Source: Saccharolobus solfataricus P2 (lineage in GTDB: Archaea; Thermoproteota; Thermoprotei_A; Sulfolobales; Sulfolobaceae). From it: a stretch of 64,000 bases of DNA. This document shows positions 3,634-62,124 of this stretch, in pieces; within the stretch, counting starts at the first letter, position 1, and every line of letters starts with the position of its first letter. Location: NCBI RefSeq assembly GCF_000007005.1, contig NC_002754.1; one strand, written 5' to 3'. The translations under genes and the position numbers were made by a program. The notes below the pieces were generated by a model. That model saw nothing but the letters and a program-made list of their open reading frames with translations. It was not told the origin of the DNA and did no database searches.

Positions 3634-6600
3634 GATAATCTCTTATAGAATTGAAAGTTTGCCATTGCAGAATTATCGCCCAGAACAAATTTCTGATAAT
3701 CTCTTATAGAATTGAAAGATCATATATCTTGTATTCCGCATATTTAAATCTTTCTATCGATAATCTCTTATAGAATTGAAAGGCGGTTGAAGAAAAGTGC
3801 AGGATCACGGGGTCAGGACTGGATAATCTCTTATAGAATTGAAAGTAGACTATGCGTTATACTATGTCCGCAATGGCATTAGCGGATAATCTCTTATAGA
3901 ATTGAAAGTTGTATTTGTCGGTGGGTGAACTAACAAATATACGCCTTGATAATCTCTTATAGAATTGAAAGTCAATTTGTGAAACTTGTCCCGGCTCATT
4001 GGATTTGTTGGATAATCTCTTATAGAATTGAAAGATCAAGGGCAAATCGGGAGTCCAGGAGATTCTCGAAGCAGATAATCTCTTATAGAATTGAAAGCTT
4101 GAAATTACAGAAAAAATAACATTCATTTACCCTGTGGATAATCTCTTATAGAATTGAAAGATTCCAACGGCACTTCTTATTCTTTCACAGTTACGGGCTG
4201 ATAATCTCTTATAGAATTGAAAGCAGAATTAGCACGGTTAGTCGAGCAGTTAGAAATTTACTGATAATCTCTTATAGAATTGAAAGCTTTGAAGTACTCT
4301 TCTCTATGATACGACACCAATTCTCGATAATCTCTTATAGAATTGAAAGAAATTCTCGCAGAATTCTATCTACCGGACGATGTAGCATTGATAATCTCTT
4401 ATAGAATTGAAAGAAACCCGAACTTTTGCTATATATAGCATTTCGAACTTTTACGGATAATCTCTTATAGAATTGAAAGCGACACCAGTCGGTATTATCT
4501 CTTCTTCCTTCAAACCAAGATAATCTCTTATAGAATTGAAAGGAAAAGTTTGGCAGAAAAAGAGTCTGGCTTTGCCAGAAAGGGATAATCTCTTATAGAA
4601 TTGAAAGAAGATTGTGGCTATTGCCGCACCGGCGTAAGCGTATTCTTGATAATCTCTTATAGAATTGAAAGCCAAATGCCCGTGAAACATAAACATAATC
4701 TCCAGTAGACCGATAATCTCTTATAGAATTGAAAGGCTAATTCCAATGCTAAGTTATCTAGGGCAACAAACAATTGATAATCTCTTATAGAATTGAAAGT
4801 CACGTTTGCCGTACTCCACCAAAGATATGTATTGAAAGATAATCTCTTATAGAATTGAAAGGACTCGAAAGCCAAAGAGAACGAGAAATGGGACCGTAGA
4901 TAATCTCTTATAGAATTGAAAGAGCATAAGACCAAGCGCAATTGCGAGGTAATCAAAAAGGATAATCTCTTATAGAATTGAAAGACAACTCGTTCCTGGG
5001 TATCCCTGTTTTGTCTTCTAACGATAATCTCTTATAGAATTGAAAGTTTTGTCTCCAAATCGTTTGTCCAATCAAACTTAATTAAGATAATCTCTTATAG
5101 AATTGAAAGCCTTCAAACATAAGTTTGACAAATACGGTAGCCCCGCAGATAATCTCTTATAGAATTGAAAGTTTTATCCATTTGATCCCTTCCTTATAAT
5201 ACAGACCTATGATAATCTCTTATAGAATTGAAAGCAGATAGATTCCATAACTCACCTCGCCCAAGAAGACTGGATAATCTCTTATAGAATTGAAAGATAA
5301 AATAATCGTTCAATATTTCAATGAAACTGGTGTTATGGGATAATCTCTTATAGAATTGAAAGAAAAGCCAATCCCAAGATACATCATCGCAGAAATATTC
5401 AGATAATCTCTTATAGAATTGAAAGTTTTGATAACTAGATGTGGAACCGAAGTTTACTACTAGTTGATAATCTCTTATAGAATTGAAAGACAGTACCATC
5501 AAAATTAGGATAGCCGCCACAAACCAGATAATCTCTTATAGAATTGAAAGAAAGAAGCGATCAAAAAGCTGGATAAGGAGTTGAAGCAGGATAATCTCTT
5601 ATAGAATTGAAAGGGTTTCTCTCTTGTCGCCTCTGCCAGTGCATCATCTAGGATAATCTCTTATAGAATTGAAAGTCTTGTGTGGTGTTAACGATCTCGA
5701 ATCCTGGGGGTAGGATAATCTCTTATAGAATTGAAAGATAAAACATATGTATTGGTGCCTATAATTAATAGCCATCGATAATCTCTTATAGAATTGAAAG
5801 TCCAGTTTCCTTTGCAACATTATCTATAAACGTGTCCTTGATAATCTCTTATAGAATTGAAAGCTCACTATGTTTGCTGTCGAGAAGTTGAATAAGCAGT
5901 GATAATCTCTTATAGAATTGAAAGTCTCCTTTTCTTCTAAGCTAAGATAAGCCTGTTTAATAGATAATCTCTTATAGAATTGAAAGTTACCTCTACAACT
6001 CCCAGCTTCCTCTGTTGAATGCGGAGATAATCTCTTATAGAATTGAAAGTTCAATTTATGTGTTACTTTTAATAATTGTTTCACTGCCTGATAATCTCTT
6101 ATAGAATTGAAAGTCGGATATGTCAGTCTTGACGAATTCGTATGCGTCTCCTTGATAATCTCTTATAGAATTGAAAGAAATATAAACCATAAATCGTCAA
6201 CAATTAGACTAACATGATAATCTCTTATAGAATTGAAAGCATGGTGGGGGGGCGTCAAAAATTCAGAAATATTTTGCATGATAATCTCTTATAGAATTGA
6301 AAGAACTCCTTTGCAATCCTATATCTAGTGTAGCCGTCTAAGATAATCTCTTATAGAATTGAAAGCTGCTCCATCAAACGGCCCCGTGAGGGATACTATG
6401 AAGATAATCTCTTATAGAATTGAAAGAATTTGAACATAATTCGGCCTCGTCAGTTTTCCACAGATAGATAATCTCTTATAGAATTGAAAGTCCCTAACTT
6501 AGGTTGGGGTAAAGAAATAGAACATAGATGATAATCTCTTATAGAATTGAAAGTTTACTGACAACGCCATCATACTTACTAGCCCAACTAAGATAATCTC

Positions 6601-35490: not shown

Positions 35491-36527
35491 CCGTGGTCTA
35501 CCGCTGGACGAACAGAGTGGGGTGGGTGTCGAAAGCACTCACTAGCTATGAAGTGATGAGAATGAAGGCGGTAAACCGCAAACCTATGAACCGCTCTAAG
35601 GGAACCATTGCCCTTTACGGTAGACCCAAAATCACCTCCATAAAAATAAATCTATAGTATTAATAAGTGTTTCCTCAAGATTAAATATAAAATCCTTTAG
35701 ATCAGATAAATCGTCTAGAAAGCAGAGGATGAGCAGCAATCTAAACTCCTCTCTTGTCATGACGTTCTTAAACACGGTGTAAAGCGAGTAGAAGATCATG
35801 GCCAGCACGAAGATCAACTCGCGGAAGATGAACTTGGTGGAGCTCGTGAAGGGAAGGAAGGCCTTGATGTTCCTGTAAGACGTCTCAATGGGACTCCTAA
35901 CCTTGTTGTACAACTTCAGCACTTCCCTCTTGGGTAGGTCGAGGTTGGTCGCCCTCGCGAAGTACACCACGGTCTTCTTCCTCTTCTTAACGATTTCCTT
36001 ACCATACACCAGGAGTCTGAACTTGACCTGCTCTTCCTTCTTATACCTCTTACTGTTTGTCGTGTACTCTCCGTCGAACTCCTCGTAGATCTTCACGTCC
36101 CCCACAGGGACTCCTATCACGAACTTGAACTGCGATATGAACTTGAGGACTTCCACGGTGTAGAATCCCGCGTCCAAGGTTACGAGCCCCACCTTGAGGC
36201 CCATTCCCACAATTTGCTCCATGAGAAGCTTCACGATCTCATCCTTGCTCATCCCGTTAACTTGGGGAACGAAAGCTAGGAGGAGCACCATATTCTGATA
36301 CTTCGTGATCGCGGTAGCGTAGTTCCACGAGTTCCCCTTGGCTGAACTACCCAGTCCCTCCACCGGCTTACCATACCACGTCTTGGTTGTCCAGTCTATG
36401 GAGATGTCGACTTCCTTCACTCCCTTGAGTATCTCCATGGAAATCCTCCTCATGGACTCTAATAGCTTCTCGATCACCTCAGTTCCCTGCTCCTCCACGT
36501 AGTTCCTCACGGTCTGTGGTGACACGT

Positions 36528-37755
36528 GAGAGTGTCCGGAATGTAATTATCTGAACGAATAGATAAACAGAATGATAAATATTAATATTGCCAGAAGGGT
36601 AGGACCTGGATCACCGAGAAAAACTTTATAATGGAAAAATATCAAGACGAGAGGATTTACCTATCGCGCATAGCGTTGCTTGATCGCGAGGAGGCGCGTC
36701 TCAGAGCTGAACGGCTCTACGTCCTGGAGGAGTCCTCCGTTGGATCGCGAGGAACATCTTGATGTTGTAGATCACTCCCAGGACGTGAAGGAAGACGTCG
36801 TTCCTCCAGGTCGTGGTCCCGTAGGGCCTCCAGAACGCGTTCAGGTAGGTGCCGAAGAACTCCACGTGGGCCCTCAGGGTAGTGAAGGGCTTCTCCCGCG
36901 CTATGAGCTGTGTCGGGGAGGGAGAGAATCCCCTGTCCGCGATCTTAATCCCCTTGAGCGGTGACTTGAACCTCTTGTCCGAGAAGTTGGCCGGCTTCAC
37001 CGTGATGGACCTCACGAAGAGGGAGACGGAGATCACGGCTATGGCCTTGAGCCCGTAGTGCGAGACCCCTCTCTTCTTGGTCCACCTTCCCTCGAACCTC
37101 CTCTTGGTTCTCCCCAGGGAGAGCAGCTTCCTGGCCCTCTCCAGGTTACCTTCCCTCCTCTCCAGCTCCGCCTTCTCCCGAAAGGTCTCCACGCTCCTCT
37201 TCCCAGGAGGTAAGTCCAGTAGGAAGGAGTCCACTAGCCACGCCATGAAGTCCACGAGATGCGCGCTCGCAGGGAGGTAACTGGGTAGGCACTTCTCCTC
37301 AAGCTTGAAGGAAATCTCCAACAACTTCTTCCTCACCCCGTACAACCTGCCCACGAAGTCGTGCAGCGTGCTCTTCCCCACCTTCCTCCCCACGAACCAG
37401 GCCACGACCACGTTCACGTTAACCATTTTCACCGCGTCCCTATAGGAGCAAGAGTAGAGCACCATGACGATTAACAACTTCAAGTAAACCAGCGCGCCCT
37501 CGCCCAGAACCCTCTCCAAATCCATGGCGTCCAGCACGGGCTTGATCTCCGTTAACCATTTTTCCCTCCACGGCATATCCTCTATTGGGGGAAGAGGGTA
37601 GTACATCAGGTTTGGTATGTGTCTTAATGTTCTTGCCATGGTACTACCCTCTACTCCCATAACTTAAGTGTTACTCCAATTTAATCCAAGATAATGCTAA
37701 AAACCAATTTATTCTTGCCAATAAAAATTCAATTTTTTACATTCCGGACACTCTC
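36528..37755 (-). mobile_element. GC-rich IS5-family element (1228 bp, ISC1234-like)
   Basis: TIR GAGAGTGTCCGGAAT, TSD ACGT; element name inferred from length only. Confidence 0.8.
36701..37660 (-). CDS. DDE transposase of the nested IS5-like element
   Basis: LVDSFL, IADRGF, RAHVEFF motifs. Confidence 0.85.
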   Translation of the reverse strand: MGVEGSTMARTLRHIPNLMYYPLPPIEDMPWREKWLTEIKPVLDAMDLERVLGEGALVYLKLLIVMVLYSCSYRDAVKMVNVNVVVAWFVGRKVGKSTLHDFVGRLYGVRKKLLEISFKLEEKCLPSYLPASAHLVDFMAWLVDSFLLDLPPGKRSVETFREKAELERREGNLERARKLLSLGRTKRRFEGRWTKKRGVSHYGLKAIAVISVSLFVRSITVKPANFSDKRFKSPLKGIKIADRGFSPSPTQLIAREKPFTTLRAHVEFFGTYLNAFWRPYGTTTWRNDVFLHVLGVIYNIKMFLAIQRRTPPGRRAVQL

Positions 37756-38087
37756 ACGTTATACCCTTTGGACTTGCTTTCCACGGAGTCGTTCCACAAG
37801 CACGCGGAGACCAGAACTCTCGATACCTCCTCAGCCTTTCTTCCCTTGAAGCTCAACATGGAAAGTAATTTATACCCTACTTGTTGTATATTATTTTGGT
37901 GGGGAAGACCAGGTGTTATCACCTTGTCTTCACCACGTGATAATACCGGCTTCCTCACCTTAAATCTTTCTTCAATTAGTTGCGTTCTTGTTAAAGCTAT
38001 AAATTCTATTATTTTTCAGAATCTGATATTACCCAACCAAAATTATTTTTTGTAAAATGATTTTGGGTCTACCGTTTAGGGCGGTGA

Positions 38088-41021: not shown

Positions 41022-41406
41022 CCTTCGTTAGGTTCAGTAGTGATGCTAGTTCTGCGGTTTCCCTGTTGGATAAGCCTAGATATTCCTTGATTATCAGTAT
41101 GTATGCCTTCTCTTGTGGGGTTAGTTTGCTTTTTCTCCCTTGTTCTTTCTTGATCTTGACGAACTTTGCCTCCTCTAAGTCTTGCCTTAACTCTCGACCG
41201 AATCTTCTTAATCTGGCTAACCTCTCTTCTTCGCTCTCCTTATTGTTCTCTATCTTACTGAGCCTACTTTCCTTGTACAACTTGATCAAGTCCTCTATTG
41301 ACTCCTTGAAATTGTCGAAGTCTTTCTGAGTTAACTTCTTATTCATGTGTTCATGATAGAAAATAAGGGGTATCTAAAGTTTTTGTCCCAGAGTCCAAGT
41401 ATATAC

Positions 41407-42540
41407 CTGCTTTGTGGATTGCTTCAGAATTGTACAAAAAGTTTATAAATTATTCGTTTAAGTATTACCTATGGAAAAGAGTAAGTACAAGAGGGACTGG
41501 AGCAAGTACGACGAGAACGTCATAACTAGATATAAGTTGATGTTCCCCTTCTACGTATTCGAACATTGGTGGGACTTATTAGCAGAGGAGAACAGGAACG
41601 CTAGGACAAAGTATAAAGCTCCGAAGGAGTTCAACGAATTCCTAGCATTCTTACACATCTTCCTACCTTACAGAGCAATAGAAGGAGTATTGAGAGCCTT
41701 AGAACAATTGAAGATCATCCCCACAAGCCTCGACTACTCAACAATATGGGAGAGAGTGAGGAACATGAACATAACCTTCCCCGAGACAAGTGACGAACTT
41801 GAAGTAATTGCAGACGCTACCGGCATTAGCACAAACACGGGAGGACAATACATTGTTGCCAAGTGGGGTAAGACTAGGGATTCAAAATTCCTCAAGATCG
41901 AGATAGTAATGGACAATAACGAATTCAACGTGATAAACGCTGAGGTCACTAGCAACGAGGTTGAAAGTGCTGTAAAAACAGTTAAGGATCTTCAAGATAA
42001 GGGAAAGAAGGTCAAGAAGTTTTATGGAGATAAGGCATATGACGCCAATGAGGTTTACAAGACCGGAGTTGAGGTTGTAGTTCCTCCCAAGAAGAACGCT
42101 TCTACTAAACGCCATCTTGCTAGACGTAAGGCTGTGCGGGAGTTTAGGAAGTTGGGTTATGATCGTTGGAAGGAGGAGAAGGGTTATGGCGTTAGGTGGC
42201 GGGTCGAGTCCTTGTTCTCTGCGGTGAAGCGTACTTTTGGGGAATCGGTTAGACAAGTTTTGCTGGGCAAGTAGTTGAGGCTAAGCTCAAGTTCTGGGCT
42301 TACGCTAGTGCTTTCAGAAAGTTTATAGCTTTAGGCAAAGGATATACCACTAGATCATAGTCTAAGAACTTTTCCAAAATACTAGCGTGGATGGTTAACT
42401 TGGCGAATTCTGTAGTCGGTAGGGCTCCGGGCATTAGGGTGTAAGCTTGAGAAGAACGTTGAAATAAATATTAATTACTGAAAAATTAGTGTTATACAAT
42501 ATCGTTTTAATGAGACAAATTGAACGAATCAACAAAGTAG
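41407..42540 (+). mobile_element. ISC1058 (IS5 family); transposase 41471-42274 frameshifted, SM1 in its 3' end
   Basis: Ends CTGCTTTGT/ACAAAGTAG, 8-bp TSD GTATATAC; IADATG, YGDKAYD, RWRVESLFS. Confidence 0.88.
42306..42384. mobile_element. SM1-type MITE
   Basis: 79 bp, TSD GC, interrupts FWAY/AWM. Confidence 0.9.
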
Positions 42541-42585
42541 GTATATACCACAAAGTTTATAAAGCAAGACTTGAACAGCATAACG

Positions 42586-43083
42586 ATGTCAAAAAAAGAG
42601 AGTTATAAGGAGTTAGTTGAAAAATCAGATGTTAAAGTGCTGAAGCAAGTACAGCTTAAGGATGGATACTACGTAATGGAAGATAGGCATGTTTTAACAC
42701 ATAGCTTACTTCATAAAATAAAAACTTCGTTAGATGATACTAAAGTAATAACTACAGTTACACAACGCGATGACGGATCACTAAGAATTACTCTTTTCAT
42801 GTATAAGGTAGTCGGAGATAAGGATGAACAAGGGTTTTACACAATTAAGAGTAGGGGAATTTACATAAATATTAAGGGGGATAACGTAGAAATATTTGAA
42901 GGTGGACCTGCAGAAGTGAAATCACCGTTGATTGAGTCTAACCCGGGTGAAGAAAAAGAGGTGTTATTGAAGGCTATAACTAAAGGTACTGAGAACGAAA
43001 TGTTCTCTAGGTTCTTGGAAGTAAATGGATCATCAGGGCTTACAGATCTTGTAAAGAAAACTAATTTTCATAAGGTGACGTAA
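42586..43083 (+). CDS. Hypothetical protein (165 aa), probably leaderless
   Basis: TTTATAAA at 42556-42563, 22 nt before ATG 42586; no recognised motif. Confidence 0.7.
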   Translation: MSKKESYKELVEKSDVKVLKQVQLKDGYYVMEDRHVLTHSLLHKIKTSLDDTKVITTVTQRDDGSLRITLFMYKVVGDKDEQGFYTIKSRGIYINIKGDNVEIFEGGPAEVKSPLIESNPGEEKEVLLKAITKGTENEMFSRFLEVNGSSGLTDLVKKTNFHKVT

Positions 43084-43085
43084 TG

Positions 43086-43239
43086 ATGGCTGGGTTAGAT
43101 GAATGGACAACTGAAATATGTATTGACGGAGGTTGTGAAGATGCTTGTACCATAAGTTGAAGTTTACCCCCTTGGTACAGATGCAGCATGTTATGCAGGA
43201 TGTCTAGAACTCTGTGCAAGTAGTGTAGGCTGTGATTGA
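43086..43239 (+). pseudogene. Cys-rich 50-aa peptide with one extra A at ~43155 (halocin C8-like hairpin)
   Basis: Corrected: MAGLDEWTTEICIDGGCEDACTIVEVYPLGTDAACYAGCLELCASSVGCD; GGTGA RBS at 43074. Confidence 0.65.
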
Positions 43240-43277
43240 TTAAGCTTTCGCTATATAATCCCTAATTACAAAAGACC

Positions 43278-43310
43278 GAAAGCCCTACCCCTTCTAGGGG
43301 TGGGATAAGC
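43278..43310 (+). mobile_element. IS200/IS605 end-hairpin relic
   Basis: GCCCTACCCCTTCTAGGGGTGGG resembles the hairpin at 32665-32696. Confidence 0.6.
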
Positions 43311-43399
43311 GAAAGTCAACCTCCCAAGTTTACCACTATTAACTATTGGTTGGGCAGAGCTAAGATACTTGTTATCTCCAGCCAAGGTATATAGTTCCC

Positions 43400-43478
43400 T
43401 AGTGCTTTCAGAAAGTTTATAGCTTTAGGCAAAGGATATACCACTAGATCATAGTCTAAGAACTTTTCCAAAATACTA
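43400..43478. mobile_element. SM1-type MITE
   Basis: 79 bp; flanks CC/AC do not match, suggesting an adjacent deletion. Confidence 0.88.
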
Positions 43479-44160
43479 ACGTCAATTAAGAAAGTTCTAG
43501 CTAAGGTTGGCAGTAAGCCCGTAATGCGCGTCAATATAGGTTTTTCCTCAATCTATGTTACTCTATAAACGCTTGGACTGGCGAAGTAGTGGTTTCTCTT
43601 GCTAAAAGGCCTAACTCTGATAGTAGTTTTAGGAAATTCCCTTATCATAAAAAGTCAAAATATTTATCCATGTATTTATAAATATCTTTCATTGTACTTC
43701 TTAATATTATAGCTTATCAATAAACATTTCTCATCTAACCAGGAAAGATTCGTTATATATTTTTAACGTAACGTAAAAGTGTAACGATTTTCCTATAAAT
43801 GCTACTCTGAATCTGTTAAGTATTTCTTGAGGTACTTTAAGAGGCGTGTGGGTAGTGGTAGGGTTTACATGGTCATGGATAATTACTCTCCTCACAAGAC
43901 TAAGGGTACGCTTGAGGTTTGTTGCAGGAAGGGTATTCATCCCGTGTTTACTCCTCCTTACTCGCCTGAGCTTAATATGGCTGAGGCGGTCTTCAAGTCC
44001 CTCAAGAACTACATGAGCAATAAAATATTCTATACGATAGAAGACGTTAAAAACTGTATTAAACAGTTCTTTGAAGAAAATAAGTATAGATTTAATCTTA
44101 ATGCAATAACATACTTAGGATTAGATAAAATTGAGGTCTAAGAACTTTCTGGAAATACTA
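43479..44160 (+). mobile_element. 3' half of an IS630-family (ISC1048-like) element
   Basis: VMDNYSPH, PPYSPELNMAE; end AAGAACTTTCTGGAAATACTA resembles the SM1 end; interrupted by SM2. Confidence 0.82.
43621..43804. mobile_element. SM2-type MITE (184 bp)
   Basis: 6-bp TSD CTCTGA; copy of 396-579. Confidence 0.92.
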
Positions 44161-59636: not shown

Positions 59637-60679
59637 GACTCTGGGACAAAAACTTTAGATACCCCTTATTTTGTATCATGAACACATGAATAAGAAGTTA
59701 ACTCAGAAAGACTTCGACAATTTCAAGGAGTCAATAGAGGACTTGATCAAGTTGCACAAGGAAAGTAGGCTCAGTAAGATAGAGAACAATAAGGAGAGCG
59801 AAGAAGAGAGGTTAGCCAGATTAAGAAGATTCGGTCGAGAGTTAAGACTTAGAGGAGGCAAAGTTCGTCAAGATCAAGAAAGAACAAGGGAGAAAAAGCA
59901 AACTAACCCCACAAGAGAAGGCATACATACTGATAATCAAGGAATATCTAGGCTTATCCAACAGGGAAACCGCAGAACTAGCATTACTACTGAACCTAAC
60001 GAAGGAGGAGATAAGCCACAAGACAGTAGAGAGACTATACTCCCACCCCACATCTTCGTCATCCTCTACAACCTACTCTCAAAGACCGCTAGTGGCCTCA
60101 AGGTGGTCATGGACAGGACAGGTTATTCCCTAGTAGTAACCAAGCATTAAAGGAGTGAAAGGGAGAAGTCTGGGGAAGATGTGAAGGAAGGAGTTCGCGT
60201 ACTCCTTCTTCATCTTTGACTTGGGTAGTAACTTGATTGTCGCTTACGGTTATTCGCTTAAGAGTGAGAGGGAGGCTTATGAGATGGTCCTCGAGGTCCT
60301 GAGGGATCTTGGTGTAAAGGTTGACTCCTTGAGGGCTGACAAGTACTATAGCAAGTCTATACTGGATGACTTCCCTGATTCTGAGAACTTGATACCCTAA
60401 CGCTACGATCAAGGGAGGGAAAAGGTGGAGGGAGATGATATTGAAGTTCATGAAGAACCCACTGGAGTATTTGGAGGAGTATTTTAAGCGTGAGAGGCTC
60501 TGATCTTCATTAAAAGGAGGACAGGGTGGATCATAAATAAGGTCAGGGAAGAGAGGATCCACTTGACGGTCTTAGCGAGGGTCGCGATTCACGATCTACT
60601 GTGGTCTAAAGCGCTAGATTAAAAATCCCGAAATGCTATATAAATTTGGAAACCCATTAGACTAATTTGTCCCAGACTC
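59637..60679 (+). mobile_element. ISC1043-like element (1043 bp), transposase frameshifted
   Basis: TIR GACTCTGGGACAAA; no intact ORF. Confidence 0.87.
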
Positions 60680-60899
60680 TCAAAATTTTCTTAGACCTTG
60701 GCTGTAAGAGCTGGGTCAGTACCCTCGGGACTGGGGGATCTTAAGCCTGTGGAGAGAAAACCCTCCGTAACCTCTCTTTCACACGGGGTATTAGAGAACG
60801 ATTCCGTTCGATGGAACCTCAGCTGTGGGTGAAGGGGGATCGAGGTTTCTCTGAGAAGCAGGAAATCTTCACCGCGAGGTGGAGATACCCCGCCCTTAG

Positions 60900-62124
60900 C
60901 GGTAGACCCAAAATCACCTCCATAAAAATAAATCTATAGTATTAATAAGTGTTTTCTCAAGATTAAATATAAAATCCTTTAGATCAGATAAATCGTCTAG
61001 AAAGCAGAGGATGAGCAGCAATCTAAACTCCTCTCTTGTCATGACGTTCTTAAACACGGTGTAAAGCGAGTAGAAGATCATGGCCAGCACGAAGATCAAC
61101 TCGCGGAAGATGAACTTGGTGGAGCTCGTGAAGGGAAGGAAGGCCTTGATGTTCCTGTAAGACGTCTCAATGGGACTCCTAACCTTGTTGTACAACTTCA
61201 GCACTTCCCTCTTGGGTAGGTCGAGGTTGGTCGCCCTCGCGAAGTACACCACGGTCTTCTTCCTCTTCTTAACGATTTCCTTACCATACACCAGGAGTCT
61301 GAACTTGACCTGCTCTTCCTTCTTATGCCTCTTACTGTTTGTCGTGTACTCTCCGTCGAACTCCTCGTAGATCTTCACGTCCCCCACAGGGACTCCTATC
61401 ACGAACTTGAACTGCGATATGAACTTGAGGACTTCCACGGTGTAGAATCCCGCGTCCAAGGTTACGAGCCCCACCTTGAGGCCCATTCCCACAATTTGCT
61501 CCATGAGAAGCTTCACGATCTCATCCTTGCTCATCCCGTTAACTTGGGGAACGAAAGCTAGGAGGAGCACCATATTCTGATACTTCGTGGTCGCGGTAGC
61601 GTAGTTCCACGAGTTCCCCTTGGCTGAACTACCCAGTCCCTCCACCGGCTTACCATACCACGTCTTGGTTGTCCAGTCTATGGAGATGTCGACTTCCTTC
61701 ACTCCCTTGAGTATCTCCATGGAAATCCTCCTCATGGACTCTAATAGCTTCTCGATCACCTCAGTTCCCTGCTCCTCCACGTAGTTCCTCACGGTCTGTG
61801 GTGACACGTTATACCCTTTGGACTTGCTTTCCACGGAGTCGTTCCACAAGCACGCGGAGACCAGAACTCTCGATACCTCCTCAGCCTTTCTTCCCTTGAA
61901 GCTCAACATGGAAAGTAATTTATACCCTACTTGTTGTATATTATTTTGGTGGGGAAGACCAGGTGTTATCACCTTGTCTTCACCACGTGATAATACCGGT
62001 TTCCTCACCTTAAATCTTTCTTCAATTAGTTGCGTTCTTGTTAAAGCTATAAATTCTATTATTTTTCAGAATCTGATATTACCCAACCAAAATTATTTTT
62101 TGTAAAATGATTTTGGGTCTACCG
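60900..62124 (-). mobile_element. ISC1225, intact (1225 bp)
   Basis: TIR CGGTAGACCCAAAATCA, TSD TTAG. Confidence 0.93.
60914..62008 (-). CDS. ISC1225 DDE transposase
   Basis: ISIDWT, TLDAGFY, RSPIETSYR. Confidence 0.92.
   Translation of the reverse strand: MRKPVLSRGEDKVITPGLPHQNNIQQVGYKLLSMLSFKGRKAEEVSRVLVSACLWNDSVESKSKGYNVSPQTVRNYVEEQGTEVIEKLLESMRRISMEILKGVKEVDISIDWTTKTWYGKPVEGLGSSAKGNSWNYATATTKYQNMVLLLAFVPQVNGMSKDEIVKLLMEQIVGMGLKVGLVTLDAGFYTVEVLKFISQFKFVIGVPVGDVKIYEEFDGEYTTNSKRHKKEEQVKFRLLVYGKEIVKKRKKTVVYFARATNLDLPKREVLKLYNKVRSPIETSYRNIKAFLPFTSSTKFIFRELIFVLAMIFYSLYTVFKNVMTREEFRLLLILCFLDDLSDLKDFIFNLEKTLINTIDLFLWR

Follow-up and report, generated by a model that had tools for sequence, protein, structure and literature searches.

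The antagonism factors that are known in Sulfolobales are, to our knowledge, large proteins only (the sulfolobicins and the SSV toxin B310), and we know of no small peptide toxin with a cognate protector described in this group. Sulfolobicins are larger, vesicle-associated proteins, and disulfide-stapled helical hairpins are represented by the plant alpha-hairpinin defence peptides and by the twin-CX3C small Tim proteins. B310 is a virus-encoded protein of about 34 kDa (PMC8628083). The halocin C8 family is recognised by TIGR04449 (halocin_C8_dom), by the HalI domain PF22862, by twin-arginine translocation (Tat) export of a single 283-residue precursor and by the cleavage of this precursor, and HalR and HalT1-3 (ABC-transporter) neighbours are described for halC8 (bioRxiv 10.64898/2026.07.27.741052). 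Here we analyse one stretch of 64,000 nucleotides (nt) from Saccharolobus solfataricus P2 (contig NC_002754.1), called the window below, in which a gene for a 165-residue protein (the large gene, 42586-43083, + strand) is followed by a short cysteine-rich frame, for which a hidden halocin-C8-like peptide had been proposed (the original prediction). As judged by alignment with intact alleles from other Sulfolobaceae, positions 43086-43265 of the window are the decayed second cistron of a Sulfolobaceae-only two-gene operon.

A two-gene operon whose second gene is dead in the window

For comparison, 37 related loci were fetched, and in seven of them an uninterrupted open reading frame (ORF) of 61 codons starts 2 nt past the TAA of the large gene, behind a GGTGA motif; two further loci carry the 61-codon ORF as far as an assembly gap or contig end. 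Four distinct natural alleles are represented, namely P0018 (locus L004), P0019 (L006-L008 and L033-L035), P0023 (L005) and P0024 (L036/L037). All intact alleles have kept the junction (TAA, 2 nt, ATG) together with the GGTGA motif, and in every one of them the large gene and the peptide gene are separate cistrons in different frames. The four alleles show no indels and 39 of the 61 residues are invariant, including eight Cys and three Trp. The Cys pattern is C12-x4-C17-x3-C21-x2-C24-x10-C35-x3-C39-x3-C43-x5-C49, with the eight invariant Cys mirrored about the invariant turn ACTICWSLPPG, and the tail has the conserved motif IDW.FS..DP. The intact peptides are strongly acidic (8-10 acidic and 0-1 basic residues), and direct reading of their N-terminus (MPGLDEW…) gives neither an RR motif nor a hydrophobic core.

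In the window, the TAA of the large gene is read at 43081-43083, and a GGTGA Shine-Dalgarno-like motif (43075-43079, + strand) lies within the last codons of this gene, 6 nt 5' of the homologous peptide ATG. From the alignment of the DNA to the intact alleles, what follows on the + strand falls into three parts. Piece 1 (43086-43160) corresponds to codons 1-25 in the ancestral frame, within a 25-codon ORF at 43083-43160 that reads MMAGLDEWTTEICIDGGCEDACTIS up to its stop; codon 24 is Ser in place of an invariant Cys, and codon 25 is TGA in place of an invariant Trp. Piece 2 (43161-43239, codons 26-49) reads SLPP and then GTDAACYAGCLELCASSVGC; it is Cys-rich, lies in another frame and ends at an out-of-frame TGA (43237-43239). 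The last part (43240-43265) is a decayed remnant of the C-terminal tail (ancestrally …IDWAFS..DP-stop), where the ancestral stop aligns with 43263-43265 and homology to other loci ends at about the same place. When the lesions are counted against L036, the nearest intact relative, there are at least six of them, two being nonsense. The codon of a conserved Cys reads Ser at 43155-43157, and the Trp codon after it is a stop (43158-43160); the Pro-Pro run (43167-43173) has gained one base, and 5 nt are missing after 43233; another Trp codon has turned into a stop (43241-43243), and the tail lacks 2 nt. This number of lesions, including two nonsense changes, means genuine decay and not mis-sequencing. 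The short Cys-rich frame is therefore almost certainly a pseudogene of a real 61-residue, eight-Cys peptide gene, and the pair is a translationally coupled operon of which the second gene is dead in this window. In this genome it is an unannotated pseudogene beside a retained orphan partner gene.

The original prediction was right that a Cys-rich peptide gene, absent from the annotation, is hidden behind the 165-residue gene, as intact 61-codon homologues stand at the same position in other Sulfolobaceae, and right that it is broken here. Its sequence facts hold as well (the TAA, the GGTGA motif, the short Cys-rich frame, the 654 nt of 42586-43239 and the string obtained when one A is removed near 43155), together with its remark that no signal peptide is visible; a Tat motif is absent too. 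Set against the intact alleles, the Cys-rich frame behind the large gene is far more than chance. The pattern of seven Cys with C-x13-C and a central Pro is an artefact, because the junction used for it was not the ancestral one (…CTIVEVYPLG… in the quoted splice vs …CTICWSLPPG… in the intact alleles). One or two indels, or sequencing errors, had been supposed instead of the at least six lesions counted above, and the supposed single 217-residue precursor does not agree with intact alleles that have TAA and 2 nt between two genes in different frames, with the GGTGA motif upstream. That piece 2 and the large gene share a frame results from the lesions, and is not evidence of fusion.

A TGA is found at the same invariant Trp25 codon in the window (43158-43160) and in Acidianus manzaensis (L001, about 6576-6578), and the copy of A. 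manzaensis has a further TGA at Trp7. The common TGA may go back to one lesion in an ancestor of both, or to a G-to-A change that occurred more than once; in the large-gene tree the window and A. manzaensis are not grouped together. Just beyond the end of homology the window has a G+C-rich imperfect palindrome, CCCTACCCC-TTCT-AGGGGTGGG (43283-43304), which may represent a hairpin of the terminator type or mark where a repeat element ends.

For every family search of the peptide the natural intact alleles were the queries, and the broken window copy was not translated through its stops; the Pfam, NCBIfam, PADLOC and PHROGs scans covered the large protein, each of the two window pieces on its own, and natural intact alleles. 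An exhaustive HMMER search with the peptide profile over 1.84 billion representative proteins returned its own cluster and three weak matches to long repeat proteins only, and these three were judged to be composition or repeat artefacts. One of them is a secreted protein of Aquilegia coerulea (PIA28743.1, P0021) with four tandem C-x2-C-x2-LPPG-x3-AC-x3-C modules, which resemble the invariant turn of the archaeal peptide (39% identity over 31 residues per repeat); the likeness is probably that of a convergent Cys-stapled hairpin and not homology. No copy of either gene was found in plasmid and phage collections (DNA and protein searches) or in two viral-contig scans, and nothing points to an origin from a virus or plasmid. 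The AlphaFold2 (AF2) model of the peptide, of low confidence (mean predicted local distance difference test, pLDDT, of 56.7 from a three-sequence alignment), predicts a helix at residues 4-25, a loop and a helix at 32-45; Foldseek with this model against the PDB gave nothing at E ≤ 0.001, and the PDB sequence search with the peptide gave only hits with E > 0.4.

As for the halocin C8 family, a natural intact allele searched against NCBIfam at E ≤ 10 gave TIGR04117 at E = 4.3 only and no TIGR04449, the Pfam scan of the two window pieces was empty, and for the large protein a Pfam scan at E ≤ 1, which bears on the HalI model PF22862, gave no families.

Partner gene, loss of the peptide and divergence of the alleles

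The ORF of the large gene is intact in the window, and its product is presumed to be the binding or neutralising partner of the peptide. The NCBI annotation starts this gene at TTG 42571 (170 residues, HFC64_01830), and the 165-residue protein is identical to S. solfataricus HFC64_01830 and has 100% identity to P0001/P0025. It had been called an orphan, but it belongs to a small Sulfolobaceae family, with relatives in 16 other clusters at 68-82% identity from A. manzaensis, Metallosphaera hakonensis, Sulfolobaceae metagenome-assembled genomes (MAGs) and bins, and acid hot-spring metagenomes. A profile built from 12 diverse large proteins gave no remote relatives among 4,784 candidates, and on the evidence of these searches the family is small, closed and confined to Sulfolobaceae.

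The large protein is soluble, Cys-free and about 166 residues long, and direct reading of its N-terminus (MSKKESYKELVEKSDVKV…) shows neither an RR motif nor a hydrophobic core. No Pfam, NCBIfam, PADLOC, PHROG or PDB family matches it above threshold, and the sub-threshold hits of the profile scans were DUF5545 (E = 0.016, below the cut-off), phrog_13166 (E = 0.076) and the TIGR04117 hit given above. Its AF2 model, also of low confidence (pLDDT 52), consists of a beta-meander followed by helices, and Foldseek against the PDB with this model was uninformative, with no fold match. The VapW antitoxin (9kan_B) was considered as a relative and rejected, because VapW has a VapD/Cas2-type ferredoxin fold (PMC11980593) that is incompatible with the predicted beta-meander and helices; the PDB sequence match reaches E = 0.13 only. 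Between species the large gene is under purifying selection, with w (the ratio of non-synonymous, dN, to synonymous, dS, divergence) of 0.23-0.36.

Some copies of the large gene are altered. In L024 (contig Ga0326758_100558) the large gene is disrupted: a chimeric ORF (P0017) combines residues 1-68 of its product with a RidA/YjgF-like domain (PF01042), while the C-terminal fragment of 95 residues is found elsewhere on the same contig, and the peptide gene of this locus was already dead. In L005 (4001-4045) the canonical ATG reads ATA, the next start being a GTG 16 codons downstream, and in L036 (242-260) the canonical ATG is missing and an upstream GTG start is called; in both loci the peptide gene is intact. 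The start codon may be flexible in these loci, the MAGs may contain errors, or the partner may be at an early stage of decay.

Across the loci, loss of the peptide gene has occurred on at least four or five occasions, with its partner remaining under purifying selection. In 18 metagenome loci that form one clade (class B, L009-L026) the peptide gene is cut after codon 20 at a shared breakpoint, and its ATG is mostly lost. In class C (L029-L032) the gene is deleted, with the breakpoint in the last three codons of the partner, and since class C groups with intact loci in the tree, this is an independent loss event. The peptide gene is decayed as well in the window, A. manzaensis and Metallosphaera copies. 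The large gene of class B has a pooled pN/pS (non-synonymous to synonymous differences) of 0.26 and a median w of 0.24 over 73 pairs, with dS up to about 0.13, and clear disruption of the large gene is confined to loci whose peptide gene had already died (L024, L026).

The class B breakpoint (e.g., L014, 3557-4203) joins about 100 nt of new sequence and the gene of a 180-residue protein with two transmembrane segments, for which there was no Pfam match; Rfam and tRNA scans of this breakpoint region found nothing. The subclade L009-L012 has an additional rearrangement, and the occurrence of the large gene with the peptide remnant as a cassette in differing genomic contexts suggests mobility. 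Behind the large gene of class C (e.g., L029, 4602-7255) there is a conserved trio of genes coding for a 278-residue protein, a QueC-family protein (PF06508) and a 357-residue protein, which could be a defence-type cluster.

The divergence between the intact alleles is concentrated in one place. In roughly 2.6 kb of flanking sequence L004 and L006 share about 99% identity, whereas their peptide genes differ at 13 of 183 nt (Fisher p = 7e-8). From codon 124 of the large gene to codon 59 of the peptide gene there are 18 nucleotide changes, which give 17 amino-acid replacements and no clean synonymous change; the local excess of substitutions is roughly 9-fold, and the replacements fall on partner residues 124-131 and on positions between the Cys of the peptide. 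A recombination tract was considered as the cause of this hot spot and rejected: a tract from a divergent allele would carry synonymous differences, and this one has no clean ones, so selection for replacement is the better explanation. This argues for positive selection acting on both genes together, as far as it can be read from the alleles. Over the six allele pairs, peptide w ranges from 0.36 to 7, exceeding 1 in three of them, and peptide dN is 1.2-7.2 times the partner dN, while partner w is 0.23-0.36 in five of the six pairs and 1.31 for the near-identical L004/L006.

The neighbourhoods of the loci are not conserved, and they are rich in VapBC, Csx1, HEPN/NTase, SLFN-like helicase and AAA_5 ATPase genes and in insertion sequence (IS) elements or their remnants. 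The window locus itself is IS-dense, with IS110, IS630-like and TnpB genes and a PIN gene nearby. An IS5-like element (41399-42548, + strand) with 28-nt imperfect terminal inverted repeats and a DDE transposase at 41471-42274 ends 37 nt 5' of the large-gene ATG and is not part of the module. Downstream of the remnant there is a solo 84-nt copy (43399-43482, + strand), 99% identical to the internal segment 42305-42388 of this element and possibly similar to a miniature inverted-repeat transposable element, and the two-gene remnant is thus bracketed by IS-derived repeats. Elsewhere in the window, the blocks 36001-38000 and 60001-62000 have a G+C content of 0.51 and 0.48 (window average about 0.36), and they could be structural RNA genes or foreign DNA.

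Candidate roles of the pair

The role that we favour, tentatively and with more doubt than conviction, is that of a new effector/neutraliser conflict module, dead here apart from its retained orphan partner. It is suggested by the combination of an invariant scaffold with a fast-changing surface, of coincident change in the partner, and of repeated loss of the effector with the partner kept. The peptide would be the fast-evolving effector, predicted to fold as a helix-turn-helix hairpin with two Cys stripes facing each other, in which a ladder of C24-C35, C21-C39, C17-C43 and C12-C49 is likely on the model and would be held by disulfides or possibly by metal. The large protein may be the cognate binder or neutraliser, whose putative specificity patch (residues 124-131) varies in step with the peptide. 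By analogy with orphan immunity genes, lineages that lose the effector would keep the neutraliser, and in this genome the effector would be dead and only the orphan partner functional. What had been proposed as a toxin/immunity or precursor module survives to the extent that the pair evolves like a toxin and its protector, and fails as halocin C8 and as a fused precursor.

Between an exported or vesicle-borne archaeocin-like peptide and a purely intracellular toxin we lean slightly to the former, because the partner was kept for long without the peptide, and because a peptide without basic residues would be near-neutral and hydrophobic at an external pH of 2-3. In the most far-reaching version, which we regard as unlikely, the intact alleles would encode a leaderless peptide archaeocin, small and with a disulfide ladder, the first of its kind in thermoacidophilic Crenarchaeota (Thermoproteota), with a co-evolving cytoplasmic immunity protein that persists as an orphan in many Sulfolobaceae, including this S. 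solfataricus genome.

Toxicity, export and binding are proposed here as candidate roles only. Several observations weigh against them. There is no signal peptide, Tat motif, transmembrane segment or conserved transporter (direct reading and the neighbourhoods of the loci), the peptide is strongly anionic and in this differs from most antimicrobial peptides, the structure models are of low confidence (pLDDT 57 and 52) with empty fold searches, and PADLOC gave no match to any defence or toxin-antitoxin model. The signal of positive selection comes from four alleles, and mainly from a single close pair; the majority of the replacements are conservative, and for the more distant pairs the w of the peptide is 0.36-0.66. 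In addition, the long retention of the large gene without the peptide may mean that it has a function of its own, with the peptide as a dispensable accessory.

Among the alternatives the one that survives best, and which is nonetheless somewhat unlikely in our opinion, is an intracellular toxin-antitoxin or abortive-infection-like pair, with the large protein as the antitoxin and without export. As a signal peptide and a transporter are lacking, it is nearly as likely as an exported peptide, and the neutraliser-first gene order and tight coupling are typical of type II toxin-antitoxin operons. The module adjoins VapBC and defence genes, the peptide and the partner patch change together, and loss of the effector is tolerated, while the neutraliser is never clearly destroyed beside an intact effector (its ATG being altered in L005 and L036). 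On the other side, neither PADLOC nor Pfam matched a toxin-antitoxin family, and the VapW match (E = 0.13) is to an incompatible fold. Moreover, an antitoxin without its toxin is expected to decay, whereas the large gene is constrained across the whole class B clade and in at least three other lineages.

A role of the peptide outside of conflict, as an accessory subunit of the large protein or as its regulator, is rather unlikely; the large protein would then carry the real function, and the fast evolution of the peptide would reflect weak constraint. The large gene kept and constrained without the peptide would agree with this, as would the mostly conservative replacements and the w values of the distant pairs, but relaxation alone hardly explains 39 invariant residues together with a roughly 9-fold local excess that is all non-synonymous, nor does it explain the coincident change in the partner patch.

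The main rival outside of conflict is metal binding, and it is quite improbable: the peptide would be a small metal- or redox-handling protein, a Cys-lined hairpin and maybe a dimeric four-helix bundle that binds Cu, Zn, Cd or Fe-S, the large protein would serve it as chaperone or regulator, and together they would be an accessory trait of metal-rich acid springs that can be dispensed with. Such a protein would agree with the eight invariant Cys, placed on two predicted helices, and with the many acidic and very few basic residues. The hosts, among them Metallosphaera and Acidianus, are acidophiles that tolerate metals, and accessory metal genes commonly have a patchy distribution. Foldseek lists the copper storage protein Csp3 at 33% identity, but with E of about 6 and a TM-score of 0.34, and no significant sequence or fold match to metal-binding families, including Cys-lined storage proteins such as Csp, was obtained in Pfam, NCBIfam, PDB or Foldseek. 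No metal-resistance genes are conserved nearby, and a burst of replacements between the Cys and in the partner, between near-identical loci, is unexpected for the scaffold of a metal site.

Membership of the halocin C8 family is already refuted, and a halocin-C8-type precursor with N-terminal immunity and a cleaved C-terminal Cys-rich halocin, broken by two indels or sequencing errors, is hardly conceivable: it has in its favour the general layout only and the shared frame of piece 2, and against it the missing TIGR04449, PF22862 and Tat motif, two cistrons in all intact alleles, at least six lesions instead of two, no halocin-like relative in the HMMER search, and the absence of HalR and HalT1-3 neighbours.

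For the window the consequence is modest, i.e., the remnant should be annotated as a pseudogene and the halocin C8 label dropped. The family has a wider meaning as a candidate conflict module, uncharacterised and restricted to one lineage, for which the four natural intact alleles (61 residues, with a 166-residue partner) and the genetically tractable Sulfolobus hosts offer a cheap test.

Comparison with known systems

Halocin C8 with its precursor ProC8 resembles the present pair in that both are archaeal, with a protective part upstream and a small Cys-rich peptide downstream, and killing with self-protection is conceivable here as well. The differences are larger: one cleaved 283-residue precursor there and two cistrons here, no Tat signal and no HalR or ABC-transporter neighbours in our loci, and another phylum and habitat. 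Sulfolobicins and B310 belong to the same host group, with competition of strain against strain in acid hot springs, but they are larger proteins, and the two-gene module had no viral or plasmid copy in the searched collections.

The putative effector may also be compared with the disulfide-stapled hairpins. The spacing C17-x3-C21-x13-C35-x3-C39 is invariant in the four alleles and corresponds to the C-x3-C … C-x3-C arrangement with a loop of about 11-16 residues, which in those hairpins is carried by two antiparallel helices with a short turn between them; for the archaeal peptide a helix-loop-helix is predicted by AF2 at the low confidence given above. The near-identical turn motif of the Aquilegia protein P0021 is an analogy only, based on one short motif summed over four repeats. 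In contrast to those hairpins, the archaeal peptide has eight Cys (four possible rungs, with predicted pairing), a conserved hydrophobic tail and no signal peptide.

In gene organisation the pair is similar to type II toxin-antitoxin systems, as both consist of small, adjacent, co-oriented and coupled genes, with the neutraliser first and, here, VapBC and defence genes beside it; the TAA + 2 nt + ATG junction is of the coupled kind. The coincident bursts of replacement in the peptide and in partner residues 124-131 would be the only, and indirect, sign of growth arrest by the peptide and of its binding and neutralisation by the partner. The differences are that neither protein matched a type II family in Pfam, NCBIfam, PADLOC or PHROGs, that the putative antitoxin outlives the toxin in the long term, and that a Cys-ladder effector is unlike known type II toxins.

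It is this persistence of the partner that is shared with the orphan immunity genes of bacteriocin and polymorphic-toxin systems. In our loci the protector, whose immunity function is putative like the toxicity of the peptide, stands upstream of the effector and has no linked secretion apparatus, which differs from those systems; in both cases, however, the effector is repeatedly lost, truncated or displaced, and the protector is kept under purifying selection in variable regions that are rich in mobile elements.

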